DNA of 64,000 bases from Blastocladiella emersonii ATCC 22665 (taxonomy: Eukaryota > Fungi > Blastocladiomycota): positions 620,001 to 684,000 of the forward strand of contig JANHCV010000006.1 of assembly GCA_025594325.1 (NCBI GenBank). The letters run 5' to 3'. The notes under the pieces are model-generated. The model worked only from the letters and a program-made list of their open reading frames with translations, was not told where the DNA came from and did no database searches. Of this stretch, positions 10,401 to 29,312 are shown in pieces. The first letter of the stretch is position 1; the number at the start of each line of letters is the position of its first letter. A program made the position numbers and the translations under genes.

Positions 10401-11517
10401 GCATGAAGTTACAGAGTCAGAACTCGAGAGTTGGAATCAGAGCCTTCCAGGCGGAGGTCAGAGCGGTGTCGGTCGGTGACGCGTCTCCCACTGCTGCGCC
10501 ACCCGACTGCCTGCGCGACCCCCGCTGTGCCACCACCGCCGTTCGGTCTGGAGAAGGTGGCCTCACTCAAGCCGACTTCAGCTCGAAAGAGACTCGGCCG
10601 ACTGCTCAGAGAGAAACTAGGACAACAAGTGACTTGTCACAGGAGAACTGGCAATGGAGGAGAAACCATGAGCAAGTTTGAGCCAGATCTTCCGTTCCGG
10701 CGTATATTCTGCAGTTCGTTCCGAGCACGCACAGACGGGGGATGGCATTGCTTCCCTCCACGCCACTAAAGCCCTGCAACCTTGCGCACAGGCAGGTTGT
10801 CGAGGTCAGTTGCATCTCTACTGTGGGGGCAGTGGTGCATGCGGGCAAGCGGGCTTACGTGGGTTCTGAGGCCACGTCAGTGAGGAATTCGGTATGACAG
10901 TTCGAACCTCGTGTTCGGGGCTGATAAGTCTATCATCCATGGGCTGCCGGGTCCAACCTCTTTCCGCTTGTCCGTAAGCACCCGATCCGCCCTGTCCCGT
11001 GACAACTGATGCGAATATCCTTCCTCATCATTTTGCATACGATTTCCTTTCCTTTTTTCGGCCATACCTCGGCTTCCCATATACGCGCGTAAGCGGTGGT
11101 CCAGCGCGGGAGACGGTGCGCGTGCAGATGCGAGACGCGTCGCGAAAACTCGTGACCCGATCACGCGCCGCGTGCGAGACTCGTCTTACAAATCCTCAAG
11201 GCCTTCAAGTTTGAGTTTGAGTTTGGGAGCATCCGAATGTTACCTGCTGTTCAGTCCAGCTGATCCTTCGCTGATCACATGAGGCGGAACGACAATCCGG
11301 TCACTTGCGTTTGGCGCTTGAACCACGAATGACGACGCTCCACGAGTAGACTTCGAACAAATGTACCTAAGACGGGATTAGGCTCTCCTCTGAGAGATTG
11401 TACGAGTCAACAATACGCCCGCCCGACTTTTTCGGCACAAACTGAGATTGAATGCGAATGCCAGCGCCGAAGCCCGCGTCCTCCTGTCCATTTATAATGC
11501 GCGCTGTCCCACTCAAA

Positions 11518-12043
11518 TTTCGCCAGCGAATGGTGCGCGTTCGTTGACAACTTCGTGACCCCGACCGCTCTGATCGCTGCGCTCGAGCCCTACGCTGCCG
11601 CCGAGTCGGCCACGGCCGCTAAGCTCGCGTCGACCATCGTCTTGGCGCCGCTGAACGTGTGCTTCGGCGCGTTCAACGATGTCCTGCTCGAGGCGTCGCA
11701 GGCTGCGCTCATGTACCGCTCCCCGCTGTGCGTATTCGTCTAGTACGTCATCCCAGCAACGCCTCGCCGCTCGGGTTCGTTGACTCGGATGGCAAAAACG
11801 CGTCGTCGCCGGTGCTGCAAGTCAACCTCAAGGACGCGCCCGAAGTCGCGTCACGCGCCTAGGCGCTCGGCAGCGTGCTCTCGGACCCCGCCATGCTCGG
11901 GGTTTTCACGGACCTGCACGAGTATGTCAACGGAGCGCTCCCACGCGAGGCCGAGTAACGCGCCTACCGTTGTCGCGACCGCTCCCTTTGACGGGCGTGC
12001 GCAAGGGCGGCGCGGCGTGGATGTACTCGCTGTTCGCAGGCAA
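11518..12043 (+). pseudogene. Inverted, internally deleted fragment of the neighbouring RavA-like gene
   Basis: Reads FASEWCAFVDNFVTPTALIAALEPYAAAESATAAKLAST, then jumps to IVLAPLNVCFGAFNDVLLEASQAALM...GKNASSPVLQVNLKDAPEVASRA*ALGSVLSDPAML...GVRKGGAAWMYSLFAG. These match two separate parts of the gene at 14692-17176, with stops and indels. Confidence 0.9.
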
Positions 12044-12431
12044 CGTCGTTGTCTCACGGGTACAGGTAGTCGTAGTTGTCGACGACCTGCGGCGCGAAAA
12101 CCTGCACGTTGAACCAGAACTTGCTCTGCCGATGCGCCTTTACGGCAGTCCACCGCCACTTGTACGCCTGCACGTCTGAGCAGTTGGCGTCGTTGTAGTG
12201 TAACAGCATCACGTCGAACCCGTCCGCGTTGAACAGCTCGAGCACCGGTAGAACGGTCTTGCGAGGGGCGTTGAAGCGATTTGTAGCCGAATGCCTGATG
12301 GCTGCGGGGCAAGGCTCGCGCGCATTCGCAGCAAGTAACAAGTTGAACGGCGGCGGGCCAGCGAGCCGACGGAACGCACAAAATGTGAGACTCGGAACAA
12401 GGATCACCTGGCACGCCGAGTGCGAATGCAT
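12040..12431 (-). pseudogene. DUF707-family gene, 5' half
   Basis: FNADGFDVMLLHYND...AHRQSKFWF...PQVVDNYDYLYP*DNDV resembles DUF707 F.I.LFHYD...QTKWW..KRFLHPD.V..Y.YIF.WDED; the TGA falls at the conserved Trp. Confidence 0.7.
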
Positions 12432-12838
12432 CTGGAAGCTGGGAGACAGCGATGCAGGCGGCGTCGGATGACTGTTCCGGCTTCGACCGACCTGCGAGGC
12501 GATTCGCGACGCGTCGACGCGTCATCCGTGCGCGGCAGGATCGTGATTGCCTGATCAGCCAACACGACCACCGAACCGAGGTCGTGCTACATCGATGGTC
12601 GATGGCACTTCATCACTTCGCATGACCCCTGTATCGCCGGTAAGTAAAAAAAAAAAAAACAGCTGACTGCCAGTGTAGTGCGGTTGCGGGTGTGGCGCAA
12701 CGCGATCATTTGCCGACCCATCGCGTGCTTTGTGGCGCGAGTCTTTCGCAGGCCGATCCCGCTGATCATCAGATCACCTTCGCAAGAGACGACGCTGTAA
12801 ACAAAAACATAACATTTATTCAAGCTTGCAAATAATGT

Positions 12839-14545
12839 TCAGTAGCGCGATTCAAACTTGCCAAAGTTGTCAAACCCGCACATCGGGAACTGGCGCTTTT
12901 GCAGCTCATATTCTGTTTCTTCCAAGTACGAATTGCGCCAGAGGGAAAGAGTGGGGACCTTGTCTCCGCGAGCTTCAAGTAGCTGCAAAAGCGGTTCCAG
13001 GCTTTCGTCTGTGATCCAATTGCCGTCCAAGATCAGCGATTACAAGTGCGGCGGCAAGCGCTCCAGCAGCAGAGCTAAATCCCGGTCGGACAGACCCAAC
13101 CAACCGAGCCACAAGTCAGTGAGACGAGGAAAGTCTCCCAAAGCCTGCATGAGCCGGCGACAAGCCGGGTTTTCGTCCGCGACCAGCCAAGCGCCGCTGC
13201 GCGCTTCCGTTTTGTACAGCCGAAGCGAGCTCAACTGCCGCGGGAGACCCTCTGCGAAGGCATCCAAGTCGTTGTCGTCGAATTCGCAAAACGTGAGCTC
13301 AAGCCTGTCGAGCGTTTGAGGGAGGTGCGGGACCAGGTACTCCATTGTACCCGCCGGGAAGGAGTTGGATGACAGGTCGAGGTCGGTGAGAGTAGCAGGA
13401 AGGTACGGGGCGAGCTCCCGGATGTCAGCGCCGGTCAACTTGTTGTCGGACAAATCCAGTTGCTCGAGAGATCGAGGAAGCGCGCGCGCAAGCGTGGCGA
13501 AGATGGGAGTCAGCGCAGTCGTGGAGCTACGTGTGAACGTGCATTGGGCAATTCGAAGCGTGCCCAGGGTTGGTGGCAAGAAGCTGAAGAGCGTGTTTGA
13601 GCCATCGAGCCGGCTGAAATCGTAGTTGTAGATGATGAGGCACTTGAGCTTGCTTGGAAAGAGGCTGCCCAGTTCGGCATCGCAGCGAGGGTCAATCCAC
13701 GAATCTTCGAGCTGAAGCTTGGTGACTGAATCGGGGAGCGGGGGTCTGGGAGCAGTTCCGATTGCTGCACGAGCGTGAGGAAGGTCATGGCGCATGCACT
13801 TGAACGCGAGAGTCGTAACCCTGGAGGGGAGGTCAAGCGACCTTGCCAAGACAGCAGACATGTCGCATGGGTCAAAGTCAAGGTAAGTGGTCACTGCATT
13901 GGGGAGCGAGAGAGTCCGGTTAAGAATCGCGATGCCGACCTGGGTGAGCCGACCGGAAACGGACATTACGCCGCCGCAGCGACCACGATTTACGTCGTGA
14001 AAGCGCCGCAAAGCGTCCTTGTCTCCTAGTTCGTGGACGATTGGCAAGGTCTGAGAGGCATCCGATGGGCATCAGTGATCTGTTTCAACTCAACGTGAGT
14101 GCAAATCGAGCCGTACCTCGTTGTTGGTCTCAGAGACTGCCCGAGCTCCAACAACACCTGAAAGTATCGGATCACACCTTGTACGAGTGGCATCTTCAAG
14201 CGTTGGGAGTGGAATACCCGAGTCACGCCACCATTCGAGGACTACATATTGTAGATTTTCGCAAGCATCCACGAACGCAGCAACGGTATAGTTGAAGGGC
14301 AGTCGCGAATCGCGCCAAAGATCGAGCACAGCGACGAAGCCGCATTTGATCGCGTCGTCCAAGGAGAGAAGCGGGCACCGGCGCAATATGGCGCGCGTGA
14401 CGCCCGGGATGTCGGCACGCCGCATGACGCGAGCGTACTGCGCAAGGCCCTCCAAGTCGCTTGGGTCGCCGTGGGCCTCCACAGCGTAGCATAAGACGTG
14501 ATCAATGAGTTGCGGTAAGTGCAAGCGTGCGTTCATGCGATTCAT
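12839..14545 (-). pseudogene. Ankyrin-like (VLxxW..S) repeats fused to RNI-like LRRs; one intron (14116-14051) and an in-frame TAA at 13040-13042
   Basis: AIKCGFVAVLDLWRDSRL and ACENLQYVVLEWWRDSGIPL repeats. A 66-nt GT-AG intron joins these in frame to LRRs (LPRSLEQLDLSDNKL, LPATLTDLDLSSNSF), which continue past the stop as LPPHL*SLILDGNWITDESL. Confidence 0.7.
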
Positions 14546-14691
14546 GGTATGTCTATTGCCGCTCGTTGCGGCGTTTGGGAGGGAGAGCAAGGAGCGGCAG
14601 CCCCGATCGATTTTGAAACTGGGCGACCGCTGCTCACGTGCATCTGAACGGCGCGATCGACATTCGCTGGCCGCTCGTTTGGGCCAGATAA

Positions 14692-17176
14692 TCAAGGCTT
14701 TGACGATGGCAAGGCAAATAGAAATTTGGTGCGAAGAAAACATATATATTTTTTTGATTGACAAAGCCGAGGGGCGGGAACTCCGGACTGCTTTGTGGCG
14801 GCAGCGGTGGCGACAGGGACTGAGACCTTGCACTCGAGCTTGGCGACCGATCCCTGCTCGGCGTGCTCCTGACCGAGCGGAAACTTCTCGAGCTTACCGC
14901 TTTCACCCACGCGAAGCTGGGACGCGCCCGCGAACCCGTGGCGGATCCCGAGTGAGTTGATCTTGGCCTGCGGCCCGCGCAGGGCGAGCTGGATGGACTC
15001 GCGATCGACCGGCGAAATGTGAGCCGCTTCTTCGTCGAACACGCCGACTACGATGACGCGGTTCGGCAGCGCGGTTTCCGGGATCGTCACCTCGCGCAGG
15101 ATCGTGTCGAGCCCGCCGCCGCTCAAAGTGCGCCGCAGCTTTGTCGAGTAGTGCTGCAGCTGATAAGCCTCACGGCCTCGCGAGTTGGTGCTGACGAGGA
15201 AGTGCTGGAAGCCGAGCAGCTTGCCGTCCGGGTGGAAGTCGATGCACAGGACGTGAATCCCGACATAATGGACGCCTTGCTCGAGCGGACCGCCAACGTC
15301 GACCAGAGTGCCGTTGCCGAGACTGACGCGGAAGTGGCCGTGCTGCCCGAGTTTTTCGTCGAAACCTTTGGAGATGACGGTCAGCGTGTGCTCGATGACC
15401 TTGGGCTGCGGCGGCTGCGCAACGATCGGAGCCGGTGCGACGGGCGTGGGGGCGGGGGTGACCACGGGAGCCGACGCAGGCGCGGCGCCGCGACTGGACG
15501 CGATACCCTCGAGGATACGCTGCTTGGCGGCGTCGGGCACGAACGCGTGCGCCTTGACCATGGCGGTGACGGCGTCAATGCCCTTGGTCTGCACGAGCGC
15601 GGCGAGCTCCTTGACGAGACGCGCTTCGAGCCACTGCACGAGGCACTGGTGCTGGTCCTTGGTCTGCCACGCGACGTAGACGATCGGGTACACGTCGAGC
15701 GGCGCGGCCTTGGTGCGGCCGTGCACGTACACGACGACGCGCAGCACCTTGAGCAGCACCACGATGCCGCGGTCCGTGAGCAGTCGCCCGCCGTACGTCT
15801 GCTGCGACTGCGCGCCGAACGCGCCCGTCTTGCCCGCGAACAGCGAGTCCATCCACGCCGCGCCACCCTTGCGCACGCCCGTCGAGGGAGCGGCGGCTGC
15901 GCCGTTGGCTGCGGCGGCGGGAGGGCCAGCGGCCCGGTACTCGGCCTCGCGCGGGAGGGCGCCGTTGATGTACTCGTGGAGGTCCGTGAACAGCGCGAGC
16001 ATGGCGGGGTCCGAGAGGACGTTGCCGAGCGCCTGGGCGCGCGACGCGACCTCGGGCACGTCCTTGAGGTTGATGCGCAGCACAGGCGACGACGCGTTCT
16101 TGCCGTCGGAGCCGACGAACCCGAGCAGCGCGAGGCGCGTGGCCGGGCTCACGTAGTCGACGAACACGCGCAGCGGGAAGCGGTCCATGAGCGCGGCCTG
16201 CGACGCCTCGAGCGGGACCTCGTTGGACGCGCCGAAACACACGTGCAGCGGCGTCGCGACCATGGTCGACCCGTTGGCGATACGGCGCTCGTTGAGGATG
16301 GTCATGAGGCACGACAGCGTCGCCTTAGACGCCTTAAAGATCTCGTCGAGGAACGCAAGCTCCGTGTCCGCGAGCATGCCGCCGAGGTTGCGCTGCGACA
16401 CGCTGACGGTCGTGAGCGACTGCACGTCGATCGGGCCGATCAGGTCGTCGACGGTCGACGTCGCGTGCAGCGTGGTCGAGAAGTGCGGGCGCGGCGTGAC
16501 GGTGCGGCGCATGGTCTCGTGGACGGGCGAGCGACTTGGTCATGCTGGGCGGGCCGTGCTGCAGCACGTTTTGGCCCGAGAGGACCGAGAGGACGCTGAG
16601 CAGCAGGGCGCGCACGGCCTCGTCGGGGTTGAGCAGCGAGCCGCACAGCTGGTTGATGAGTTGCGCCAGCTCGGCGTGGTTGAAGGCGTTGTTCTTGTTT
16701 TTAGGCACGAGCGGGATCAGCTTCTCGTTGGCGGCCGACGCGGTCGAGGAGGCGGCGGCGAGCTTGGCGGCCTTGGCCGACTCGGCGGCAGCGTGGGCCT
16801 CGAGCGCGGCAATCAGGGCGGTCGGGCACTCGAGGTCGGCGACGACCGCGTACCAGTCGCTGGCGAGCGTCGAGCGGAGCAGCGCGCAGTAGGCGAACTG
16901 CAGGTCGCGGGCCTCGGCACGCGCGTCAGCGTCGGAGCTCAGCTTGTGCAGCGACTTGAGGCGGGCGGCAAGCTGCGTGACGAGGGCCTCGGTCGCAACG
17001 GCAGCGGGCGCGGTGCCGCGCGCGGGCATGAGGAACTTGCACCCGTCGGCGGCGAGCATGTCCTCGACGCGGGCGCGCCACGACGGCCACACGCGCGCGG
17101 ACGTCAGGTCCTGCAGCGTCGTGATGGTGTCGGTCAGCGGCGAGTGCACGCGACGCGTCTGCTGCTTCGTGGCCAT
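14692..17176 (-). CDS. RavA/MoxR-type AAA+ ATPase with C-terminal ILEI/PANDER-like domain; frameshift near 16525 and degenerate Walker A (possible pseudogene)
   Basis: LSGQNVLQHGPPSMTKSL (RavA: LSGEsvfLlGPPGiAKSL), LAFLDEIFKA...LMTILNER, FGASNEVP, AALMDRFPLRVFVDYV. ORFs 16334-17311 and 14692-16512 are joined by a frame change just after the P-loop. Confidence 0.85.
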
Positions 17177-17907
17177 GGTGGTGGTGGTGGTGGTGGTCGG
17201 GGGAGCGCGAGAGGGTGTGTGCGGGACGCGGGTCCCTATAACACGAGGGCAGCGGTGAGTGGGAGAGGGGAAGATCGGCGCGACGGAAGAAGCCGGCGAC
17301 AAGCCAAGCAAACAACGGCGGGCCGAAACGAGAAGACAATGGTGCGGTCAAGGGTTCTGGTGCGGTGAGGCCGGTTATTTCGGATGATTAGCCCGCCGTG
17401 TTCGGCCGAAGAGTTCGAAGAAATCGGTGGCGAGAGAAGAGTCGCCTCCGCGGGAGGCGCGACCAGCAAGAGAGGGAGCGCGGAGCGTTGCCACGGGTGA
17501 AGGCGCGCCCGAAATCGGCATGCACGAGAAGGGAAGGCGAAGTGGTGGCGCGGAAATCGAAAGAGGGTTGTCACCGGATTGACGAACAACGGACGCGTGG
17601 CTGGCGCCTGCGCCACACCTCCTTGCCGCACTCGGTCCCTTCTCCCTCGAGATCGTCCCCGCTTCGGCGTCCGGACCGGTCCACGCTCTCGGACTCTGGC
17701 CTCGTCGGGCATCAAGTACCATCCGTCCTCGCCGCCTTCGCGGTTCGACCGGCTTCCGCCCTCATCAGCACACGACCCGACGGGCCTCGGTCGCCTCCGC
17801 GAGCTCGGCTGCCACCACCTGCTCCTCGACGTTGCAGCCGTGCGTTATGTCTCCCGCTTTGCTCCTGCGCGACAACTGGCTGACCCGCGACCTGACGCGC
17901 CACCCAG

Positions 17908-20900
17908 ATGGACCAACGCGACGCGTCGGCCGCTCGCGCGCGCGCCGCGCCTTCGCCTCCTGCTGCACCGCTCCAGCGCTCTTCCACGCCCTCTGCACCC
18001 GACGTAACTTCCGGCAACCGCCACCATGGATCGATCCACGCACGCTCCGACTCGGGCGTCAACGTCGCAGCCCCGATCGCGCACGCCGCCCAGACGGCCG
18101 TGTGCACCCCGCTTCTCCACTCGGCCGAGCCGACCCCGCGACCCGCGCCGACGGCAATTTGCGTTCCGCTCCTGAACGCGGCTCCCTCGCAGAGTGTGTT
18201 CGTGCCGGATCGTACTCCTGCTCCTTCTCCGATCGCGGCGGCGACACCCGCCAGCTCGCAGAAGGGAGTCCATGGCGGTTCTTCTTTCGTCAAGACGGTA
18301 TGACGCGTTGCTCGATACCCTTCACAACAAAGTACACTGACACGGAACTTCGCTGTCTAGTCGTCCTCGAGCGCCGGCGCTGCCGCCAACCCGACGGCCG
18401 CCGCGAACCAGCCCGCTGCCGCCGCGAAGCCCGGCACTGCTGCTGCCGCTGCTGCAGCGGCTCCGACCAAGACCAAGGTCTCGAGTGACGCGTCCAAGGA
18501 CACCAAGGTACGCTCTCCGCTTGTGTCCACTCCTCGCCTGCGCGCGTTCTCACACTTGACCCTTGCTTTCGCGCAGACCAAGCCCGTTGCTGCTGCTGCC
18601 GCTTCGACCAAGTCCAAGGTCTCGAAGACGGACAAGAATGACGCGTCCAAGAACGCCAAGGTACGCTTCTCCGCTCGCGCCCACACTCCTCATCCGCGCG
18701 CGTGCTCACATTCGACCCTTGCTTTCGCGTAGGGCAAACCCGCTGCTGCTGCTACCGCGTCGACCAAGTCCAAGGTGGACAAGCCGAGCAAGAACGACGC
18801 GTCCAAGGACGCCAAGGTATGCTGCTCCGCTCGTGCTCACCCCCATCCGCGCGCATGCTCACATTCAGCTCTCGCGCGTAGGACAAGAAGCCGGCTGCCG
18901 ATGCCGACGGCAAGGGCGACGCCAAGCCCGCCGCGCCGACGCGTTTCGCCAAGATCAAGTGGCACCCGGCCTTCGCGCCGTCCGGCTCCGAGTCCGCCGA
19001 CGGCGAGCGCCTCGACGACCTCGTCCCGCGCGGTACGCTGCTCGAGAAGCTCGACGAGTACCACCTGCGCGGCATGCTCGACGTCCTCGACGTGTTCGTC
19101 GCTGGGCCTCCGACTGAGGAGGAAACCAAGGACGACGACGATGAAGATGATGACGACGACGAGAGTGATGACGAGGAGGAGGACGATGGCTACACCAAGG
19201 CCACGGCCATCAAGGACCCCGCTGCAGACGGCGACGACGGCGACGACGGCGACGTGTCGGACGCTGACGAGTCGGACACCGAGTCCAAGTCGGACGACGA
19301 CGGCAAGGACGAGCTCGAGCCGCTCGACCGCAAGGACATTGCGCGCGTCGGCATCGTCGCCGAGTGCACGCTGACCTTGGTCCCCGACGGCCTCGAGTTC
19401 CTCAAGGATCACTCGCTCAAGGCCAAGCTCATCCTCATCGACAGCGCCATCGACTACTCGGTTAAGCGCAAGGACGGCGACGAGCGGGAGGAGAAGGACT
19501 TGGTCGACGGCAAGAAGTCCGCCGCGGGCAAGTCGTCCGCCACCAAGTCCGCGCCCGACGGTTCGGCCGACCAGAAGGAGGCCAAGACCTCGCCCGCCGA
19601 CGTGTCGAATGCTGCTGGTCTGCCGTCGACGCGCCCGCGCGCCAAGGCGACCACGACGCCGCCTCCCGCCGCCGTCGCCAAGGCCGCTGACGCGACGCCC
19701 GCGTCCATCATCGCCCAGAAGTCAACGGCCGATCGCACCCGCGAGCGCTCCAAGTCCGCGGCCGCGGCCGCGGTGCCCACCTCAGTGTCACCCACTACGG
19801 CCTCGTCGACTCGTCCCGCGCCATCAGCGCCACTCAAGGAGCGGCCCTCGTCGTTGTCATCCGCCAGCAAGTCCAAGGGCGACTCGCGCTCGTCGTCGGC
19901 CGCCGCCTCGCGCAAGGGCAAGTGCTCGGCCTCCGCCGACTCGGGCAACCACGCTGCCGACGGCGCCGCGTCCAAGGGCGCCGACTCGGACTGCGACGAC
20001 CACGACGAGGACGACGACGAGCCCAAGCAGTGGTCGCTGTACTCGATCGAGTTCGAGTACCTGCCCGGCGGGCCCGACCCGGTCCTCATTTTCCCAAGCT
20101 GCCCGCTCGGCCCCGTGGCACTCAGCTCGGTCGCCGCCGTCCTCGCGGTCCGTGGCACGACGCAGCTGCTCCTCGAGTTCACGCTCAAGCCGCCGTCGGA
20201 CGACGAGAAGGTCGACGACGGCAAGGAGTCGGCCGACGACTCGAAGCCCAAGGACGACGCTGAGAAGAAGAAGGAGGGGAAGGAGGGCGCCGACAAGGAC
20301 GGGTCCGACACGTTCGAGCTCGACGAGTGCGTCGGCTCGGCGCGGTTCATCCTCAACGGCCGCAAGTCGCACCTCGCCGCCGCTGAAATCTCGCTCAAGA
20401 TCGCGCAGTCCGAGTCCGACGACGACAAGAAGGGCAAGGACGGCAAGAGCAAGGACGGCAAGAAGTCGTCCAAGTCGGCCGGCGACAAGGCCGAGCCTGA
20501 GTCGCCGTCGCAGCAGCCGTCGTCGTCCGACGCCCAGTCCGAGCCCATCTCGCCCGCCGCGACGCCCGAGAAGAAGGTCAAGCAGGCGAAGGTCGACGCC
20601 GCCGACGACAAGAAGGCCAAGGCCGACGCCGCTGACGAGAAGAAGAAGGAGCAGAAGCCTGACGAGAAGGGCGAGATCCACTCGGTCGAGGCCACGCTCT
20701 CGTACGAGCCCGAGGACGGCGAGGACCACCACTGGACGCTGTCGCTCAAGGCCAAGGGCAGCAAGGCTGTCGCCCGCTCGCTCAAGCGCTTTGGCTCCGT
20801 CAACCTCGCCATGCCCTTGAGCAGTGAGGTGCTGCGGCTCACGGCCGCGAGCCTCCAGATCGACCTCGTCCGCGAGTCGCCCGAGGACAAGAAGAAGGAG

Positions 20901-23900
20901 AAGAAGGGCGGCGACGATCAGCAGCTCGACGAGAAGGCCGAGCGGAAGCGCGGCGTGCGCGAGTCCAAGCAGGTCAACGCCAAGACCAAGGTCGCGTCCG
21001 ACTCGGCGGTCGCGTCTGAATCGGCGGTCGCGTCCACGTCGGCGGCGCCTGAGAAGGACAAGTCAGGCAAGAAGCCGAGCCCGTGGAAGCTCCGCGGCTC
21101 AGGCAGCGCCGAGGTCGAGTACCACCACACGCTCAAGCTCCAGGACGGCCACCCGCTCATGTCGCTGCGCGGCGCCGCCAACGCAACAATCGCGGTCCCG
21201 CTCGACGGTCCCACGATCACCGAGTTCAACGGCATGATGGAGCTCGCGTGGGCCGACGCTGCAGCTCCGCCATCGTTGTCGACCGAGTCGTTGACCAAGT
21301 TGTCGGCCAAGTCGTTGGCCAAGTCGTCGGCCGAGTCGTCGGCCGAGTCGTCGGCCAAGGACAAGAAGGCGGACGCTGACAAGCCCGACCCGCGGCAGCT
21401 GGCCGTTGCCGCACGCGCGTGCTGGGTCCCGCGCCGCATGTTCAACGTCTCGTTCGGCGTCGCCGGCGCCAACCTGTACAAGGTCTCGCCCGAGTGGCTG
21501 CAGTTCCTCCTGCCCAAGGGCAAGGCGCAGCTCGTCGTGCGGTACCTGTCCTGGTTCAAGCTCGCCGACCCCAAGAAGCCGTTCCTGCTCAAGGACGCGG
21601 CCGACCCGATCTCGACCGAGGGCCTGCTCAAGCTCATCGCCAGCGTCGACGACGAGAAGAAGAAGGACGAGAAGGAGGACGAGAACGAGGCGAGTGACAG
21701 CGAAGACGGTGGCGAAACGGCCGCGTCCACTGCCGCCGTCGCGCCGGCCGCCGAGGGCTCGGGTCGCCCGTCGCAGAAGCCCGCGCGTCGTCCGCGCAGC
21801 GTGTCAGTATCGGCTCCTTCATCATCTGCCTCCGCTTCCACCGAGTCCGCCGTCTCGCCGTCGACTCGCTCGCGCTCGAACGCCGTCCATGGCGAGCCGC
21901 TCAAGGCGTCGCATACCGGTACTCGGCCGCGCGCCAAGGCCATCGACAACACGTCGTCCTCGAGTTCCAGCGCCACCACGCGCCCGCGCTCCAACGCCGT
22001 CGCTCGTCGCCCGTCCGCTGCGGCCAAGTCTGACGCGCCTGCCGAGGCCAAGGACGGTGACGACAACGACGAGGCCGTCGAGCTCCCGCCGCGCTCGTCG
22101 CTGCTCGCCATCACGTACGCCGGCACCTCGGACCTCAAGACCAAGTGGGACGACAAGACCAGCTTCTCGATCCTCGTGCTGCGCTCGCCGACCTCGGGCA
22201 ACGCGTTTGTCGCCGAGATCAGCAACGTCGACCTCGCGGCGCTGTTCAAGATCAGCGGCGGCGTCCAGCTCACCCTCGACAACGTCCGCCTCACGTATCG
22301 CCATTTCGACGAGATCAAGGAGGGCGAGAGCGACAACGAGGACGAGAAGAAGGCCGACAACAAGGACGGCAAGAAGAAGCAGGGCGCCTTGGGCACCAAG
22401 GCCTCGTCGTCTGCCGCTGCGACCGAGTCCAAGTCGTCGCCCGCCAAGGGTGCCGCCGGCAAGTCCACGTCGTCGTCGACCGCCCCGGCTGCTCCGGCAT
22501 CAACCAGCGCAACCTCGGCCGCGTCACCCGACGAGCCCGCCAACGCGGCCATCGCCCTGCCCAAGAAGGTCCCCGTCGACATGTACCAGGCTGAGGGCGA
22601 GCTGACACTGCTCAAGGACATCAAGTTCTCGGTCGCCGCCACCATGTTCCGCGTCAAGGGCTCGCTCGACGACTGGGCGCTCCGCGGGCAGGCCCTCGTC
22701 CACCGCAACAAGGTCGTCGAGTTCGCGCCGATTCTCGAGGGACTTGGCGTCGCGTCCAACTTCCGCGTCCTCGCTGTCAAGCAGCCGATGCAGAAAATGT
22801 ACCTCAAGGTCCTCGACGGGTCCGATGACGAGGAGTCTGAGGATGAAGCTGGTGACGGTGACGACGCCAAGGAGAAGGACGACAAGTCGGACGCGGCCAA
22901 CGACAAGAAGGGCAAGTCGGAGCCCAAGGACGCGACCAAGGGCGGCAAGGAGAAGCAGAAGGAGACCGACGTCGACGATGCGGCCAAGGCCGTCGCCGAC
23001 GCGCTGTCCAAGGAGCCGTCGCTCCCGCCGGGGCTCGAAAAGCTGTTCGAACCCAGCGCCGGCGAGGTGCTGCTCCAGGTCGCGCTCACCGAGTCGAGCG
23101 GCGACCTCCACCCGCGGCTTCACGGCGCGGCCATTGCGCTGTGCGTCAACATCCCGCTCAAAACGACCGCGGCCGCCGCCTCAACGCCATCCGCGTCCGC
23201 GTCCGCGTCCGCGTCCGCCTCGCCCTCCTCGGCCGTCATCGCGGGCTCGCCCAAGCGCGGGCCGGCGCGGTTCGGCATCCTCGTCAACAACCCCGGCGCG
23301 CTGTTCGGCAGCAGCGCTCTCGAAGAGCAGCAGCTCGCGCTCGCCGGTAGCGTCTCGACTGACGGCACCGTCCTGCTCCTCGGCCACGCGCGCAAGCCCA
23401 CGCCGCTCACGGCACTTATGCTGATACAGGTCATCGACGCGAGCTTCAAGCCCGACGCGTCGGTCGATAAGCTCCTGTCCGAGCTGCTCTCGGTTCGCAT
23501 CTACACGCTCGGCCTCGCGTTCGAGCGCGGCAACGGCGGCAGCAGCGGTCGCCGCGACCCCAACTCGGCCGTCACGTTCGTGGTCGGGTGCACGCTGTCG
23601 CACCTCGAGGTGCCCTTCGCCGTCATGTGCCGTCTCCAGAACGGGAAGATCGGCGTCCGCATCGCGTGTCTCCCCGAGGCGGCTGACGACGGGTCCACGG
23701 GTCTCACCGACCTCGTCAACGAGTCGCTGCCCGAGTTTGTCAAGGACGTACTCGAGATGTCACCCGTCCAGCTCGACCTGCTGTGGCTCGACCTGCGCTA
23801 CAACTGGCTCGAGAACGGCGGCGGCTCCACCACCAGCACCAGCACCAGCACCGCGGCCAAGGCTGAGAAACCCAGCAGCTCCGCCGCCAAAATCAAGCCC

Positions 23901-26900
23901 GCCGCGACCACGGCGCCGTCCACCGCCATCGACAAGCAGGAGAAGAAGTCGGGCAAGAAGGAGGCCGACGAGGACGCCGATGATGAGGAGGAGAGCGTGA
24001 CGGACATCATTCTCAACACGATCCCCAACTGGTCGGGCAAGCAGGACCCGCCGCTCGTGACGGCCGAGGACCTCGCCAAGGCCGGCAAGGGCAAGTACAC
24101 GGGCAAGGGCTTCAACCTGCAGTCGGGCCTCCACCTGCGTCTCGAGGGCGCGCTGTGGCAGCCGCTCAACCTCGACGGCGCGTCCGTCAAGGGCGTGCTG
24201 CAGCTCGGCGAGGTGTTCGCGGTCCACGCGCCGCTCCCATCCTTCAAAGTTGGCGAAAGCCTTAAGTTCGACACCAACAAGCTCATGCTGACGCGTACCG
24301 ACATCGACGTCTCGGTCGCCACCACGATCCACGCGAACGGCAAGCCGTGGGCCCGCTTCACGGGCTCGCTCTTCGCGACGTTCGGCGCGTCGCCGCTCGC
24401 GTTCAGCGTCGACGTGCGCCTCGAGCCCGCCGCCGCGAAGGCGTGGATCGCGCTCGGCGAGCTCATCGACTTTCTGCGCAGCATCTACCTCAAGGGCCTC
24501 CGCCTCGGCATCGATTTCGGCGGCCAGTCCAAGGCGTCCGTGTCCTTTATGGGCGGGCTCAAGATCCACGACCCCGCCATATCGTTCCCCGTCGTCGGCG
24601 CCGTGTCGCTCAAGCTGCCGCCACTCAAGTTCTTCTACCTGCTCGCGCGCGACGTGTCGTTCACGGGCCTCCTTGCGCCATTCGTCGGCGCCAACAGCGC
24701 GATCCTGCGCGGCTTCGCGTGGGTCGAGCAGCTGCTGCCCGGGATCAAGCACCTCGAGGTCTTCTACAAGATCGACCCGACCATTCACGCCGATCCCGAC
24801 GCGCTGCCCGACGTGAGCGACGGCGACGCGGTCGCGGGCCGCATGCGCCAGCTGCTCATCGAGACGCACGCGCTCGAGAAGGGCAGCGTCGCGATTGCCG
24901 CGCGGTGCGACATGTCGTGGTTCGGCATGCGCGCCAAGATCGAGGGCATCGCCGTGGCCACGGGCATCCATCTCGACGGCTCCGCGTCGCTTCTGTCGCC
25001 GCCGACGGCGCTCATCGACCTCAACGCGTCGCTCTCGTCGGTCAAGTGGCTCGGCGGCCGCTTCATCCTCGCCGGCAGCAGAAACGACCTCGCCACGGAC
25101 ATGGCGTGCGTCTTCAAGCTCGACACGGTCAAGGGCCTGCTTGAGCTCGACTTCCAGGCGTACATGCACATCAACCTGTTCGCCAAGCTCACGGTCGAGT
25201 GCCGCGCGCAGTTCAAGCGCAACCCGAAGACAGGCAAGCCGCGGTTCACGCTCGAGGCGACCATCGCGCTCGCGGGGACGCGGTCCGCCGTGTGCCTCAG
25301 CGGCTTCTTCCTCGTCGGGTTCCAGCCGCTCGTCCCGCCCTCGGTCCAGCCCATGGTCGAGGAATCGTTCCCCGCGACGCGCCTGCTCATGCTCCCGTCC
25401 GAGATCGGGCTCAACCTGCGCCTGTTCGGCGCGACCAAGAACGTCGACGGCACGCTCAGCTCGGCGGGCGTCGTCGAGTGTCTCTTCGGCGTGCTTGGGG
25501 AGTCGCTCAAGGGCTTCGTCGAGACGAGCCAGGCGACGATTCGCGCCGCCGAGGCCAGCCTCAAGGAGAAGGAGCGCGACCTCGGCCTCCTCGCCGTGAT
25601 CGGCGGCGCGTTCCTCAAGGCCACCTAGTTCATTGTCGACCTCGCGGGCAAGGCCGTCAGCTTCGGCACCTCGCTCCTCAAGAAGCTCACGACGGGCCTC
25701 ATCGACGTGCACTCGCTCCACTTTGGCGGCGGCATCAAGGTGGACGTGACTAACGGGAGCGCCGGTGCGCACGCGTACCTCAACGTGCACGCCGTGATCC
25801 TCGGCACCGAGTTCAAGTTCGGCCTGATGCTCTTGATCGAGGGCAACTTCCTGCGCCTCATCGCCGACGTGTTCGTCGCGCTCCTCGCCGACGTGTTCGT
25901 CGCGCTCCTCGCCGTCGACTACAGCGGCACGACGAACGCGTCGCTCTCGGTTGGCCCGTACTACCCGTGGGTCGACGGCGAGGTGTCGACGGTGCCCGAG
26001 GCGCCCAAGGTCCACACCGAGCCGGGCTCGCGCGTGCCGATGCTGCCCAACAGCGCAACCAAGGAGGAAATGGCCATCGCCGCCGAGATCCGCAAGGAGC
26101 TGCAGGAGCTGACCGAGGCCATGGCGAGCCACCCGCCAACGCCATCGACCAGCGCCCCAACCACAGCGCGCTGCCCGACGTGCGCCCAGGACATTCCGGC
26201 CACTAGCTCGGCCGTCGACGCGCACTCGGCCGTGTGCCCCAAGTCGCTCGTGCGCTGCGTGGCGTGCGACACCATGATCGCGCGCGACGCCATCTACGCG
26301 CACCGCACGAACGGGTGCAAGGAGCTGGCCAAGCTCGAGGAGCGCCAGCGCACGCCGTGCCCGCACTGCGCCGCCCAGGTTCTCGACGTTAACTACCACC
26401 TCAAGGTCGAGTGCACGCGTGTCGAGACGGCGACCGAGAAGTGCGCCAAGGCTGGGTGCGGCGCTATCTTGCCCGTCGGGTCCATGGACGCCCATCTCAA
26501 GTTCGTGTGCGACAAGAACACGGTCGCGTGCACGTACTGCCGCGCCCCGGTCATCGCGCGCAACCGCGAGACCCACGAGTCGTACGAGTGCCCGCGCCGC
26601 GACATCAAGTGCACGCGGTGCGCTGAGATGGTGCCGTACGTCGAGGGCGACACGGTCGAGGCGCGGCTGCAGCGCCATGCCCGCAAGGCGTGCTGGACGA
26701 CGTGCCCGCGCTGCACCGGTATCTACCTTCGCACCAGCGAGGAGGCGCACCGCCGCGATTGCCGGCCGTCAGTCCCGTGCAACGTGCCCGACTGCGCCCG
26801 CCAGCTGTTCAAGACCCGTATCCTGCCCAACGTGTACAGCGGCCGGTGCCGGTTCTGCGACACGTCGCTGCCCGACGACGAGGCCCTCGTCGCGCACCTC

Positions 26901-29312
26901 CGCACCTGCGCCAAGGCCCTGCTCGCGCCCGCGACCAGCAACGCGTGCGGCGCCATTTCGCTGCACCACGGCCCCGACGGCTTGACGCCCAAGGTCGTGC
27001 TGCCCGCCGGTAACTGCGCCAGCGGTGACAAGCCCGCGGCACTGGCGGACCGCGACCGCGCGGTCGTGACCATCGCCGAGACGGTCGCCGTGCCGTGCCC
27101 GCGCTGCTGCGGCGATTCGGTCACGTCGTGGAGCGCCCTCGGTGCCCACTTCGACACCTGCTCGCGCTTCGAACGCCGCTGCCCGACACCCGGTTGCGGC
27201 GTGCTCGTCACCGGCGGCGCCAAGGACGCGATGCTCGCGCACCTGCTCACGGCGTGCCCCAACTCGACCCTCACGCTGCCGTGCCCGTCGCCCGATTGCG
27301 CGGCCGTGGTGCCGGCCAAGGACCTCAACGCGCACCTGCTGCTCGAGTGCGTGACCAAGGTCGTGCGATGCCCGCACTGCAGCGAGGACGTGGTCGGCGG
27401 TCTCGTCCGCCACCTCAACCAGGACTGCATCACCTTCCGCGTCACCTGTTCGATCGACGGTTGCCCCGCGCCCGAGTACGTCAAGATGGACGAGTTCGAG
27501 CACCTTGCCACGCACCACATCATCCTGCCGCCGCTGATGCCGCCCGTCAACACCGACGCGATCGTGGGCCATGAACTCGATCTCGGCAACGACCCGGCGC
27601 GCGCGCTGTCGTCCGAACTCGCGCGGCTGGGCATGGATCCGTCGCACCCGCTGTACCTCGAGGCCGTCAACCGCCTCGTCACGGGCTCGCTGCTCGTTCG
27701 CGAGCCGGCGACCGTCGGCCTGCCCTGCCGCAACCTGTGCGGCCACTCGTTCGACGCGCCGCACGAGGAAGCACTGCACGTCGCGTTCAAGTGCTCGCTC
27801 AGCATCATCCAGTGCCCGCTCCCGAACTGCGACATTGCGTACGCGCCGGGCGCGCACCACATCCACGCCGTGACCGAGTGCATCGATGCGCGCGTGCCGT
27901 GCGCGCAGTCGTGCCCCGCCGCCAAGGCCGATGAGGTCCCGCTCCTCATGACAACGCACCACGCCGTTGTCGAGTGCGCCTCGGCCCCCGCCGCGTGCTG
28001 GTTCTGCACCGAGCGCGTTCCCCGCGCCGACCTCGCGCGCCACATCGAGACGGCGTGCACGCAGCGCCACGCGCTCGGGCGGTGCGACCAGTGTGCGACC
28101 ACGTTCCCGCGCCACCAGCTGGCCAAGCATCTGCTCACGGGCTGCTCTGCGCGCCGCGTCCTGTGCGGCGTCGGGTCGTGCTCCAAGATGGTCGCGTCCG
28201 CTGACCTCGTCGATCACTGGCTCCACGAGTGTGAGTCGTCGCTCCGCGGGACCACGGCGTCGCTGCCGGCGTGCACGCGGTGCAAGGCGGGCAGCTTCGC
28301 GTCGTACCGCGACTGGCTCGTCCACCTCGTCAGCGGCGACTGCAAGCCGCCGGCCAAGTCGCACACGTGCGGCACTTCGACCTCGACAACCATGATCACG
28401 TTCTCGCTCGCTGGTGCCTCGGACGCCGTCCTCGTGCCGTGCCCGATGCGTTGTGACACGCCAGCAATGCCGCTCGGCCGCCTCATGGAGCACTTTGTCG
28501 TTGGCTCGATCAAGCACCCGCCGTGCAAGAAGCTCGACGTCGACCTGCCGTGCCCCAACTCGCGCGCCGGGTGCACCGTCACGGTCAAGCGCTGGGCAGC
28601 GCAGCACCACTTGCAGCACGAATGCAACTTCCACCAGATCCGGTGCCCGATGTGCGACGAGCAGATCAACTCGCTCGACCTGCCCAACCACTGCGCGCTC
28701 GAGTGCCCCAAGCGGTACACGCTGCGCGTCATGTCCAAGGGCTTCAACGACCGCGAGATGAAGGCCGGCGACGCGTCGGTCGCGCTCAACGGCGTCAAGA
28801 TCGTCGACCTCGAGACGCAGGTCGACCCGACGCGCTGGCTGTGCCGCGGCCTGCACATTGTCGTCATCGACAACCTCGGCGGCGGGCCCAACCAGCCGCC
28901 GACGATCCTGCACTGGATGTTCGACACGCACGCCGACGTGCGCGCGGCGTGGCAGATCCACCACAACGACCCGACGCACAAGAACCTGACCAGCACCGTG
29001 TGGACCAAGCCGCTCGTCGAGACGCTCAGCGGGCTCGTTGACGCGACGGCGCCCGTGTACCGCGTCATCGCCATGGCCGTCTACGACGAGGCGTCGCGAA
29101 ACCTGACCGACGTGGAGCGCGCCGCCATCCACGCCATGATCGGCGGGCCGCGCAACGAGATCAAGAAGATCGGTATGCGCGAGAGCTACGTTGCCGCGAT
29201 GCAGCTGCGCCCCGCCGGCGACGGGACGCTGGCGCGCGCCCATCTCGGCGAGGCGCGCGGACCCGTCGGGTCAAGCGTCACGATGGAGGGGAACGTGCCG
29301 TGGGCTATGTAG
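17908..29312 (+). CDS. Giant (~3,710 codons) protein: low-complexity N-terminus, long beta-rich region with acidic/Lys/Ser insertions, ~22 TRAF-type zinc-finger units, C-terminal ILEI/PANDER-like domain; one in-frame TAG at 25626-25628
   Basis: Exons 17908-18297, 18361-18507, 18577-18660, 18733-18816 and 18882-29312, all phase-0 GT-AG junctions. ORFs 19074-25628 and 25707-29312 are in the same frame (78 nt apart) with uniform codon bias. Repeated CxxC-x(10-16)-H-x(3-5)-C motifs occupy about 26170-28710. Confidence 0.85.
18480..18881 (+). repeat. Three tandem exon+intron units (~150 bp each)
   Basis: Each exon ends GACGCGTCCAAG(G/A)AC(A/G)CCAAG|GTA. The introns (69, 72 and 65 nt) share GCTC(T)CCGCT...CGCGCG...CTCACA...GC(G)CAG/TAG. 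Exons 3 and 4 are both 84 nt. Confidence 0.9.

Follow-up and report, generated by a model that had tools for sequence, protein, structure and literature searches.

Relatives of the gene pair

Most of what is understood about MoxR-type ATPases comes from prokaryotes, in which these enzymes act with vWA partners, and in RavA a LARA domain that sits after the ATPase module tethers the enzyme to LdcI. ILEI/FAM3 domains are known mainly as secreted or luminal modules of animals. MoxR proteins also occur in the MoxR-vWA ternary conflict systems of multicellular prokaryotes, in which MoxR is accompanied by a vWA-beta-propeller fusion and by a third protein of variable type (Kaur et al., 2020, PMC7159879). 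Both kinds of protein, MoxR and ILEI, were found together in an early-diverging fungus, Blastocladiella emersonii ATCC 22665, in a stretch of 64,000 nucleotides that was analysed as a whole and is called the window below (contig JANHCV010000006.1:620001-684000, assembly GCA_025594325.1). There, the gene for a RavA/bpMoxR-type AAA+ ATPase and a giant zinc-finger gene lie head to head; a lectin-fold domain stands behind the ATPase module and also ends the giant, the products carry no secretion signals, and the gene pair is found in two genera. The best explanation, to which we give an even chance, is that a MoxR-type chaperone is coupled to a giant scaffold in a divergent gene pair conserved in Blastocladiomycota, and that the window holds a diverged third copy of this pair. 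The comparative sequence evidence points to an undescribed two-protein machine; a literature search on ILEI and bacterial conflict systems returned unrelated papers only, and no search was aimed at the gene pair itself. If the two proteins do cooperate, they would represent a new coupling of a MoxR chaperone to a client, and maybe a fungal counterpart of the bacterial defence systems that are gated by nucleoside triphosphatases (NTPases).

The ATPase gene runs from an ATG at 17176 to 14692 on the minus strand. Profile and structure matches place its product in the MoxR clade, as a RavA-like enzyme that is not RavA itself. The downstream open reading frame (ORF; 14692..16512, minus strand; 606 codons plus stop), which covers the part of the AAA+ core that follows the P-loop, then the lid, a linker rich in Ala and Pro and the ILEI-like domain, matches bpMoxR in Pfam (E-value 4e-25; 88 bits against a cut-off of 27), together with AAA_5 and the RavA-type lid AAA_lid_8, and the closest solved structure of an intact paralog is RavA (E 5e-27 over RavA residues 11-187). 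The RavA equivalog model NCBIfam PRK13531 reaches 115 bits against a cut-off of 681, with the AAA+ core alone aligned, which marks the protein as not RavA proper. A search with the same ORF returned three close paralogs in B. emersonii and, after them, prokaryotic bpMoxR proteins only. Like RavA of E. coli, whose partners are ViaA and LdcI, the fungal enzyme has a C-terminal appendage after the ATPase module, in the place where RavA has its cargo-docking LARA domain. Unlike RavA, it is eukaryotic, lacks a LARA domain and, among the annotated neighbours, a ViaA-like vWA partner; its appendage is either ILEI-like or a coiled coil, and in Blastocladiella it carries an N-terminal extension of ~190 aa, for which no family match was found. 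In the window, this extension and the start of the AAA+ core occupy the original frame between the ATG and a frameshift (16528..17176, minus strand).

Comparison with the conflict systems gives a similarly mixed result. As in those systems, a bpMoxR ATPase stands beside a large multidomain partner with variable ends, and the partner in Allomyces javanicus has a metallo-beta-lactamase (MBL) domain of the defence type. Unlike those systems, the blastoclad pair has no vWA, beta-propeller, VMAP or iSTAND component that could be found, its genes are eukaryotic and intron-bearing, and the partner is a single giant with TRAF-type fingers. Since neither a vWA domain nor a beta-propeller turned up, the pair does not qualify as a MoxR-vWA ternary system; in the giants and among the annotated neighbours, the bpMoxR-type ATPase is the only component of one that is present.

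Conservation of the head-to-head arrangement

The giant gene (17908..29312, plus strand) is annotated as H9P43_005517 (P0113), with a product of 3,700 aa. The starts of the two genes, at 17176 on the minus strand and 17908 on the plus strand, diverge across 731 bp (17177..17907), in agreement with the gap of ~730 bp reported in the preliminary description; this intergenic region is presumably a bidirectional promoter. The head-to-head pair was identified three times in the B. emersonii genome and once in Allomyces arbusculus, and what had been proposed as a two-gene system from one locus is therefore a conserved unit. In the two further B. emersonii pairs, P0002/P0101 (3,545 aa) and P0003/P0114 (3,553 aa), ATPase and giant genes are again head to head, with gaps of 886 bp, and the P-loops of P0002 and P0003 are intact. 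Their loci (L001 and L002; JANHCV010000002.1, ~2.54-2.62 Mb; "contig 2" below) are inverted copies of each other, with 99.97% identity over 11,734 nt that breaks off abruptly in the Ala/Pro-rich linker of the ATPase: the AAA+ parts of P0002 and P0003 are identical, and the ILEI-like domains beyond the linker share 36-37% identity. From the aligned sequences, this boundary at a domain junction looks like a trace of gene conversion or cassette exchange.

The A. arbusculus giant, P0116 (4,111 aa), ends in the same C-terminal domain (E 7e-33), and across a gap of 1,181 bp its gene diverges, again head to head, from a bpMoxR gene whose product has 643 aa. In a tree with 18 prokaryotic relatives, the Allomyces and Blastocladiella ATPases are sisters with 100/100 support. 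The Allomyces enzyme has the P-loop GPPGTAKS and ends in a coiled coil rich in Glu, Lys and Arg. The presence of the pair in Allomyces with a coiled-coil ATPase indicates that the pairing predates the split of the genera and that the ILEI-like tail was added later, in Blastocladiella; the common domain, at first taken to characterize the pair, is not a conserved trait of it. The search for the same pair in other Blastocladiomycota, which had been suggested as a check, thus gave a linked pair in A. arbusculus but, in A. javanicus, a giant (P0109, locus L004) without an ATPase gene within 10 kb. This unlinked giant is directly downstream of a dynamin-type GTPase gene.

It is improbable, in our judgement, that the linkage is without function, that is, that block duplication and a common promoter region hold the genes together and that local shuffling gave them a common domain with no joint role. 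Such a history would account for the contig-2 pairs, which go back to one recent inverted duplication, for the unlinked giant of A. javanicus, and for the ILEI-like domain on its own, in the two-domain protein P0102 and in a fragment at locus L009. However, the head-to-head order has been kept between genera although the giants share 25-30% identity, and the window pair still shares it with the contig-2 pair at a synonymous divergence (dS) of ~0.4.

Two further candidates were rejected. Locus L009 (JANHCV010000005.1) was considered as a fourth pair, but it is an orphan domain fragment with no giant or ATPase gene nearby; the fragment encodes ~125 aa of a giant-type ILEI-like domain and is annotated as a 93-aa protein. 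An F-box neighbour of P0003 was considered as a third gene common to the loci, and it has no relative in the window.

The shared ILEI/GG-lectin-like domain

The domain shared by the two window proteins lies at 14818..15399 on the minus strand in the ATPase gene (domA) and at 28710..29309 on the plus strand in the giant gene (domB). The C-termini (14695-15345, minus strand, and 28764-29309, plus strand) align by BLASTP with an E-value of 4e-17 and 28% identity over 160 columns, as had been read from the sequence at first, and tblastn with either domain found no third copy in the window. The original assignment to ILEI/PANDER stands by fold and by remote similarity, and not by Pfam threshold: the giant's domain scores 20 bits (E 1e-3) with Pfam ILEI PF15711, for which the gathering score is 27, and the ATPase's domain has no match. 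A phmmer search with the giant's domain against 1.84 billion representatives returned 14 proteins, six from Blastocladiomycota, six bacterial, and a last two that look spurious. The bacterial matches (E 3e-6 to 9e-4), one of which comes from Microcoleus, lead to the family itself, because all four that were scanned carry five bona fide PF15711 domains. In addition, a profile built from nine blastoclad domains matched ILEI-family chains only in the PDB (best E 0.0017).

Structure prediction gave the same answer for the giant's copy, to which the ATPase copy is tied by the BLASTP alignment. The AlphaFold2 model of domB has a mean predicted local distance difference test (pLDDT) score of 90, and its PDB matches at E <= 0.001, 15 in number, are without exception the POMGnT1 stem, FAM3B, FAM3C or FAM3A (Foldseek probability 1.00 each; TM-score by target up to 0.74). 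TMEM2 comes next (E 0.011), and both AlphaFold DB libraries return the same families as the PDB. The shared domain is, as far as model and profiles indicate, a divergent member of the ILEI/GG-lectin family.

The residues that bind N-acetylglucosamine (GlcNAc) in POMGnT1 are Arg129, Asp179 and Arg207 (PMC9802357). When these positions were mapped through HMMER alignments, the Arg-Asp-Arg triad was found to be kept in all four giants, domB included, as well as in P0102b, and the first Arg was found to be replaced by Val, Thr or Ser in the three ATPase-borne domains; domA has Val at the Arg129 site and keeps the Asp and the second Arg. On the strength of these residues, a GlcNAc-like or other glycan is the probable ligand of the giant's lectin-like domain. 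A single clade (96/93 support) unites the ATPase-borne domains, which indicates that the ILEI-like tail was acquired once, in Blastocladiella. Concerted evolution of the partner domains was rejected, because ATPase-borne and giant-borne domains fall into separate clades; the idea that one ligand serves both proteins is doubtful for the same reason and for the loss of the first triad Arg on the ATPase side.

The blastoclad domain therefore resembles the ILEI/FAM3 and POMGnT1 stem domains (PF15711) in fold, key motifs and the triad of the giants, but differs from them in its score below the Pfam gathering threshold and in host proteins that lack a secretion signal. The blastoclad clade also has two invariant His residues of its own. 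FAM3 proteins have disulfides, which cannot form in domB, where there is one Cys only. Neither a signal peptide nor a strong transmembrane segment was found in the giants or the ATPases, and from this lack of secretion signals we infer that the ILEI-like domain works in the cytosol here.

The nearest relatives of the domain outside the blastoclads are the bacterial five-ILEI proteins of Microcoleus and metagenomes, which similarly combine lectin-like modules with candidate effector domains: one has a caspase domain and another a sub-threshold match to PI-PLC-X. They differ in having five tandem domains, in being bacterial and in having no known AAA+ partner. Within B. emersonii, P0102 is a stand-alone protein with two ILEI-like domains (locus L005, contig JANHCV010000012.1); a gene for a URGCP-type GTPase is two genes away. 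The GTPases near P0102 and near the A. javanicus giant might act as alternative NTPase partners.

Architecture of the giant

According to the public annotation, the giant gene has exons at 17908-18297, 18361-18507, 18577-18660, 18733-18816, 18882-25595 and 25629-29309 (plus strand). Its body (18882..25595) is rich in beta-strands and broken by acidic and lysine-rich low-complexity stretches; the last ~650 aa of the body are conserved in the Allomyces giants, and no match to the body was found in Pfam, in a PDB profile search or in PADLOC. The body is followed, at 26172..28646, by an array of ~21 TRAF-type CCHC zinc fingers, recognized by Pfam (zf-TRAF, E 6e-15; CEP104_ZnF, E 2e-11) and by a CCHC regular expression, which counts 21 where ~22 had been estimated. 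This is far above the number usual in TRAF proteins. The giant thus has tandem TRAF-type CCHC fingers in common with TRAF proteins and the CEP104 array, but in Pfam it has no RING or MATH/TRAF-C domain, unlike TRAF proteins, and no TOG domain, unlike CEP104. By its predicted domain content, the giant is not a TRAF protein and has the fingers only; the source name "TRAF4" for the Allomyces protein is based on the fingers alone.

Pfam, PDB profile search and PADLOC revealed no effector domain in the giants of B. emersonii. Pfam also finds no vWA domain in the giants, although a cryptic one could lie in the unmodelled body. By contrast with B. emersonii, where the domain is absent, the A. javanicus giant P0109 opens with an MBL-fold domain (residues 1-460), for which a search with the N-terminus alone gives 25 bits with Lactamase_B (cut-off 22.7). 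Models of bacterial defence effectors score higher (LmuA, E 1.6e-12; Avs1a, E 1.5e-8; DRT RTasMBL, E 3e-6). In A. arbusculus, the metal-binding motif of this domain is degenerate.

The bacterial family DUF6603 surfaced three times for the giant body, through language-model features and shape, each time at chance-level scores. These leads cover residues 1650-2620 of P0113 and 430-1570 of P0109; some DUF6603 proteins are fused to Kelch propellers, and no paper that mentions the family was found in a literature search. Two tandem repeats also occur in the window giant gene (plus strand): a 156-nt exon-plus-intron unit in 2.5 copies at the 5' end (18486..18866), and a 24-nt in-frame unit in 2.4 copies (25857..25914), which doubles a hydrophobic octapeptide in comparison with the paralog.

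Lesions and selection in the window copy

Although the ATPase gene belongs, as first described, to the MoxR/RavA family, it is not one open frame, and neither an intact Walker A motif nor a continuous frame is present in the window copy. On the minus strand, the Walker A sequence is GPPSMTKS (16532..16555), compared with GPPGTAKS in P0002, P0003 and the Allomyces ATPase. Four codons past the P-loop, a run of C with one base more than in the intact paralogs shifts the frame (16525..16527), and just upstream of the P-loop there is a 9-nt in-frame tandem duplication (SVL SVL; 16577..16594) that the intact paralogs lack. At its other end, the gene reads ~40 codons beyond the position of the paralogs' stop. 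The duplication, the P-loop changes and the 1-nt insertion are all found again at locus L003 (JANHCV010000006.1:353757-378592), a truncated duplicate 251 kb away that is ~97% identical to positions 12300-16771 of the window and has no giant gene. These lesions are therefore real and predate the duplication that gave rise to L003. A sequencing error was rejected as the source of the frameshift on the same grounds and in view of the assembly, which combines PacBio HiFi reads with Illumina polishing (PMC9730499). The polishing tool was Pilon.

The contig-2 paralog served as outgroup to polarise the differences between the window and L003. In the window lineage, 12 changes are synonymous and none is nonsynonymous; L003 has 24 and 25, respectively, and in addition a stop codon and indels that shift the frame (Fisher p 8e-4 for the two patterns; binomial p 1.4e-7 against neutrality). 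This pattern indicates that the window ATPase copy is still constrained. To judge from the substitutions, its P-loop and frame were broken long ago, yet purifying selection still acts on the gene, whose product is probably a subunit or adaptor that is ATPase-dead or truncated at the N-terminus. Translation may perhaps begin at 16512, where the downstream ORF starts with a Met that the intact paralogs also have, as a conserved residue within their chains.

The giant gene is, as proposed, a zinc-finger gene with an ILEI-like end, but it is interrupted by an in-frame TAG (25626..25628, plus strand). The codon falls within a moderately hydrophobic helix that is kept in the paralogs, which have Ser at this site, and in Allomyces. 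In the public annotation, the same three bases end a 33-nt "intron" (25596..25628), which removes 11 codons conserved in the paralogs and Allomyces and is about half as long as the four other introns of the gene (63-72 nt). For these reasons a genuine intron was rejected as unlikely; it is, on sequence grounds, most likely an annotation device, and the deposited 3,700-aa protein H9P43_005517 differs from what the DNA encodes. A sequencing error was rejected as well, because short-read unitigs from two DNA runs, which stem from the same sample as the assembly and are not independent of it, cross the TAG without differences. The TAG is the sole lesion in the 11 kb of the gene, and the ratio of nonsynonymous to synonymous substitution rates (dN/dS) against the paralog is 0.41-0.62 on both sides of it, at dS 0.34-0.46. 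A single lesion without a rise in dN/dS after it indicates that the stop is recent, or that it is read through. The window thus adds to the pair an ATPase gene that has neither P-loop nor intact frame and is nevertheless selected, and a public gene model that masks a stop codon; both points matter to users of the annotation of this genome.

With both genes damaged, the window pair could also be a decaying, non-functional duplicate of the contig-2 pair, from which neither gene yields a useful protein. The P-loop substitutions, the 9-nt duplication and the frameshift of the ATPase gene, its overrun past the paralogs' stop and the read-confirmed TAG in a conserved helix of the giant all fit such a relic, and further broken copies exist at 11435-12043 of the window and at L003, P0004 and L009. 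We nevertheless consider it unlikely, because the window ATPase gene acquired only synonymous changes after its lesions while L003 decayed, and because the giant, with one lesion per 11 kb and no relaxation downstream, must have been selected until very recently.

Proposed action of the pair and a possible immune role

If a MoxR-type chaperone is coupled to a giant scaffold, a hexamer of the ATPase would most likely assemble, remodel or release the giant, as such chaperones do with a client. The C-terminal appendage of the ATPase would then be the tether, roughly in the manner of LARA between RavA and LdcI. In Allomyces, this tether would be the coiled coil; in Blastocladiella, it would be the ILEI-like domain, acquired once, which could pair with the giant's own ILEI-like domain. 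A precedent for pairing between such domains is provided by the FAM3C fold, which is capable of dimerization by domain swapping (Jansson et al., 2017, as cited in PMC9802357). The Arg-Asp-Arg-bearing domain of the giant would bind a glycan ligand. The window giant would be a copy stopped by one recent nonsense codon, with intact working copies on contig 2.

Several observations weigh against this coupling. With 99.97% identity between them, the two contig-2 pairs of B. emersonii amount to one independent observation. The shared domain cannot have been the original basis of the coupling, since the A. arbusculus ATPase lacks it, and the A. javanicus giant has no ATPase gene close by. The vWA partner usual for such ATPases is missing, as the preliminary description had remarked, from the Pfam lists of annotated neighbours at five loci, although the window as a whole was not scanned specifically for vWA. 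The model of the giant body, built from a four-sequence alignment, has a pLDDT of 50 and does not reveal what the ATPase would act on. Finally, simple decay would also fit the damage to both genes in the window. The preliminary description was accurate in what it observed, and its interpretation holds in the fold and the conserved linkage, but not in the shared domain as a trait of the pair or in a single ligand. Its view of the fingers as a ubiquitin scaffold is conjectural, and so is the role in immunity that it suggested, which gains some weight from the defence-type MBL domain with which the A. javanicus giant begins.

A role in immunity or conflict, with the pair as a fungal descendant or analogue of the prokaryotic MoxR-centred conflict systems, is a tentative and more specific version of this coupling. 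In its details, which are equally tentative, a lectin-like sensor, a scaffold of zinc fingers and beta-rich segments and, in Allomyces, an MBL effector would be combined in the giant, the ATPase would set the threshold of activation, and its variable tail would give specificity. Several features agree with this. The top Pfam match of the ATPase, bpMoxR, is the family that was defined on MoxR-vWA-beta-propeller conflict systems (PMC7159879), and its best matches beyond the blastoclads are prokaryotic; the MBL domain of the A. javanicus giant fits defence-effector models best, and the nearest non-blastoclad relatives of the ILEI-like domain are the bacterial five-ILEI proteins, with their caspase domain in one and sub-threshold PI-PLC-X match in another. 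The divergence of the ILEI-like domains of P0002 and P0003 behind identical AAA+ parts, the fast evolution of the giant (dN/dS 0.4-0.6), and a family history of paralogy, relics and Helitron-linked fragments at a locus between islands of lower G+C content also speak for it. On the other hand, the B. emersonii giants contain no recognizable effector and the MBL motif of A. arbusculus is degenerate; the ATPases have no PADLOC match, there is neither a vWA domain nor a beta-propeller, and weak constraint would equally give a high dN/dS.

In the fullest form of this idea, zoosporic fungi would have assembled from parts of prokaryotic conflict systems a hitherto unrecognised machine for innate immunity or non-self recognition, in which the bpMoxR-type ATPase gates the giant. 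The giant would supply a glycan sensor, a zinc-finger and beta-rich scaffold and an MBL effector, which Allomyces would have retained and Blastocladiella lost or replaced; the fast-diverging ATPase tail would set the specificity, and the window ATPase would be a regulatory or decoy subunit. Taken as a whole, we regard this scheme as rather unlikely.

Fragments and gene models around the ATPase gene

A partial inverted copy of the ATPase gene is present at 11435..12043 (plus strand; 75-80% DNA identity), 3-5 kb from the ATPase gene itself, in a stretch of lower G+C content with DUF707 fragments. In the public annotation, the ATPase gene model (858 aa; window 12054-17176, L006:4147-9269) is a chimera of the frameshifted MoxR-like gene and a piece of DUF707. 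The model P0001 at L003 is the same MoxR-like/DUF707 chimera. Elsewhere on the contig, P0004 (H9P43_005410) is a gene model in which part of the ATPase lid (AAA_lid_8) is fused to a piece of Helitron_like_N, the latter with an E-value of 1e-4 that is below threshold. This arrangement of sequences hints that Helitron-type elements may have spread pieces of the ATPase gene.

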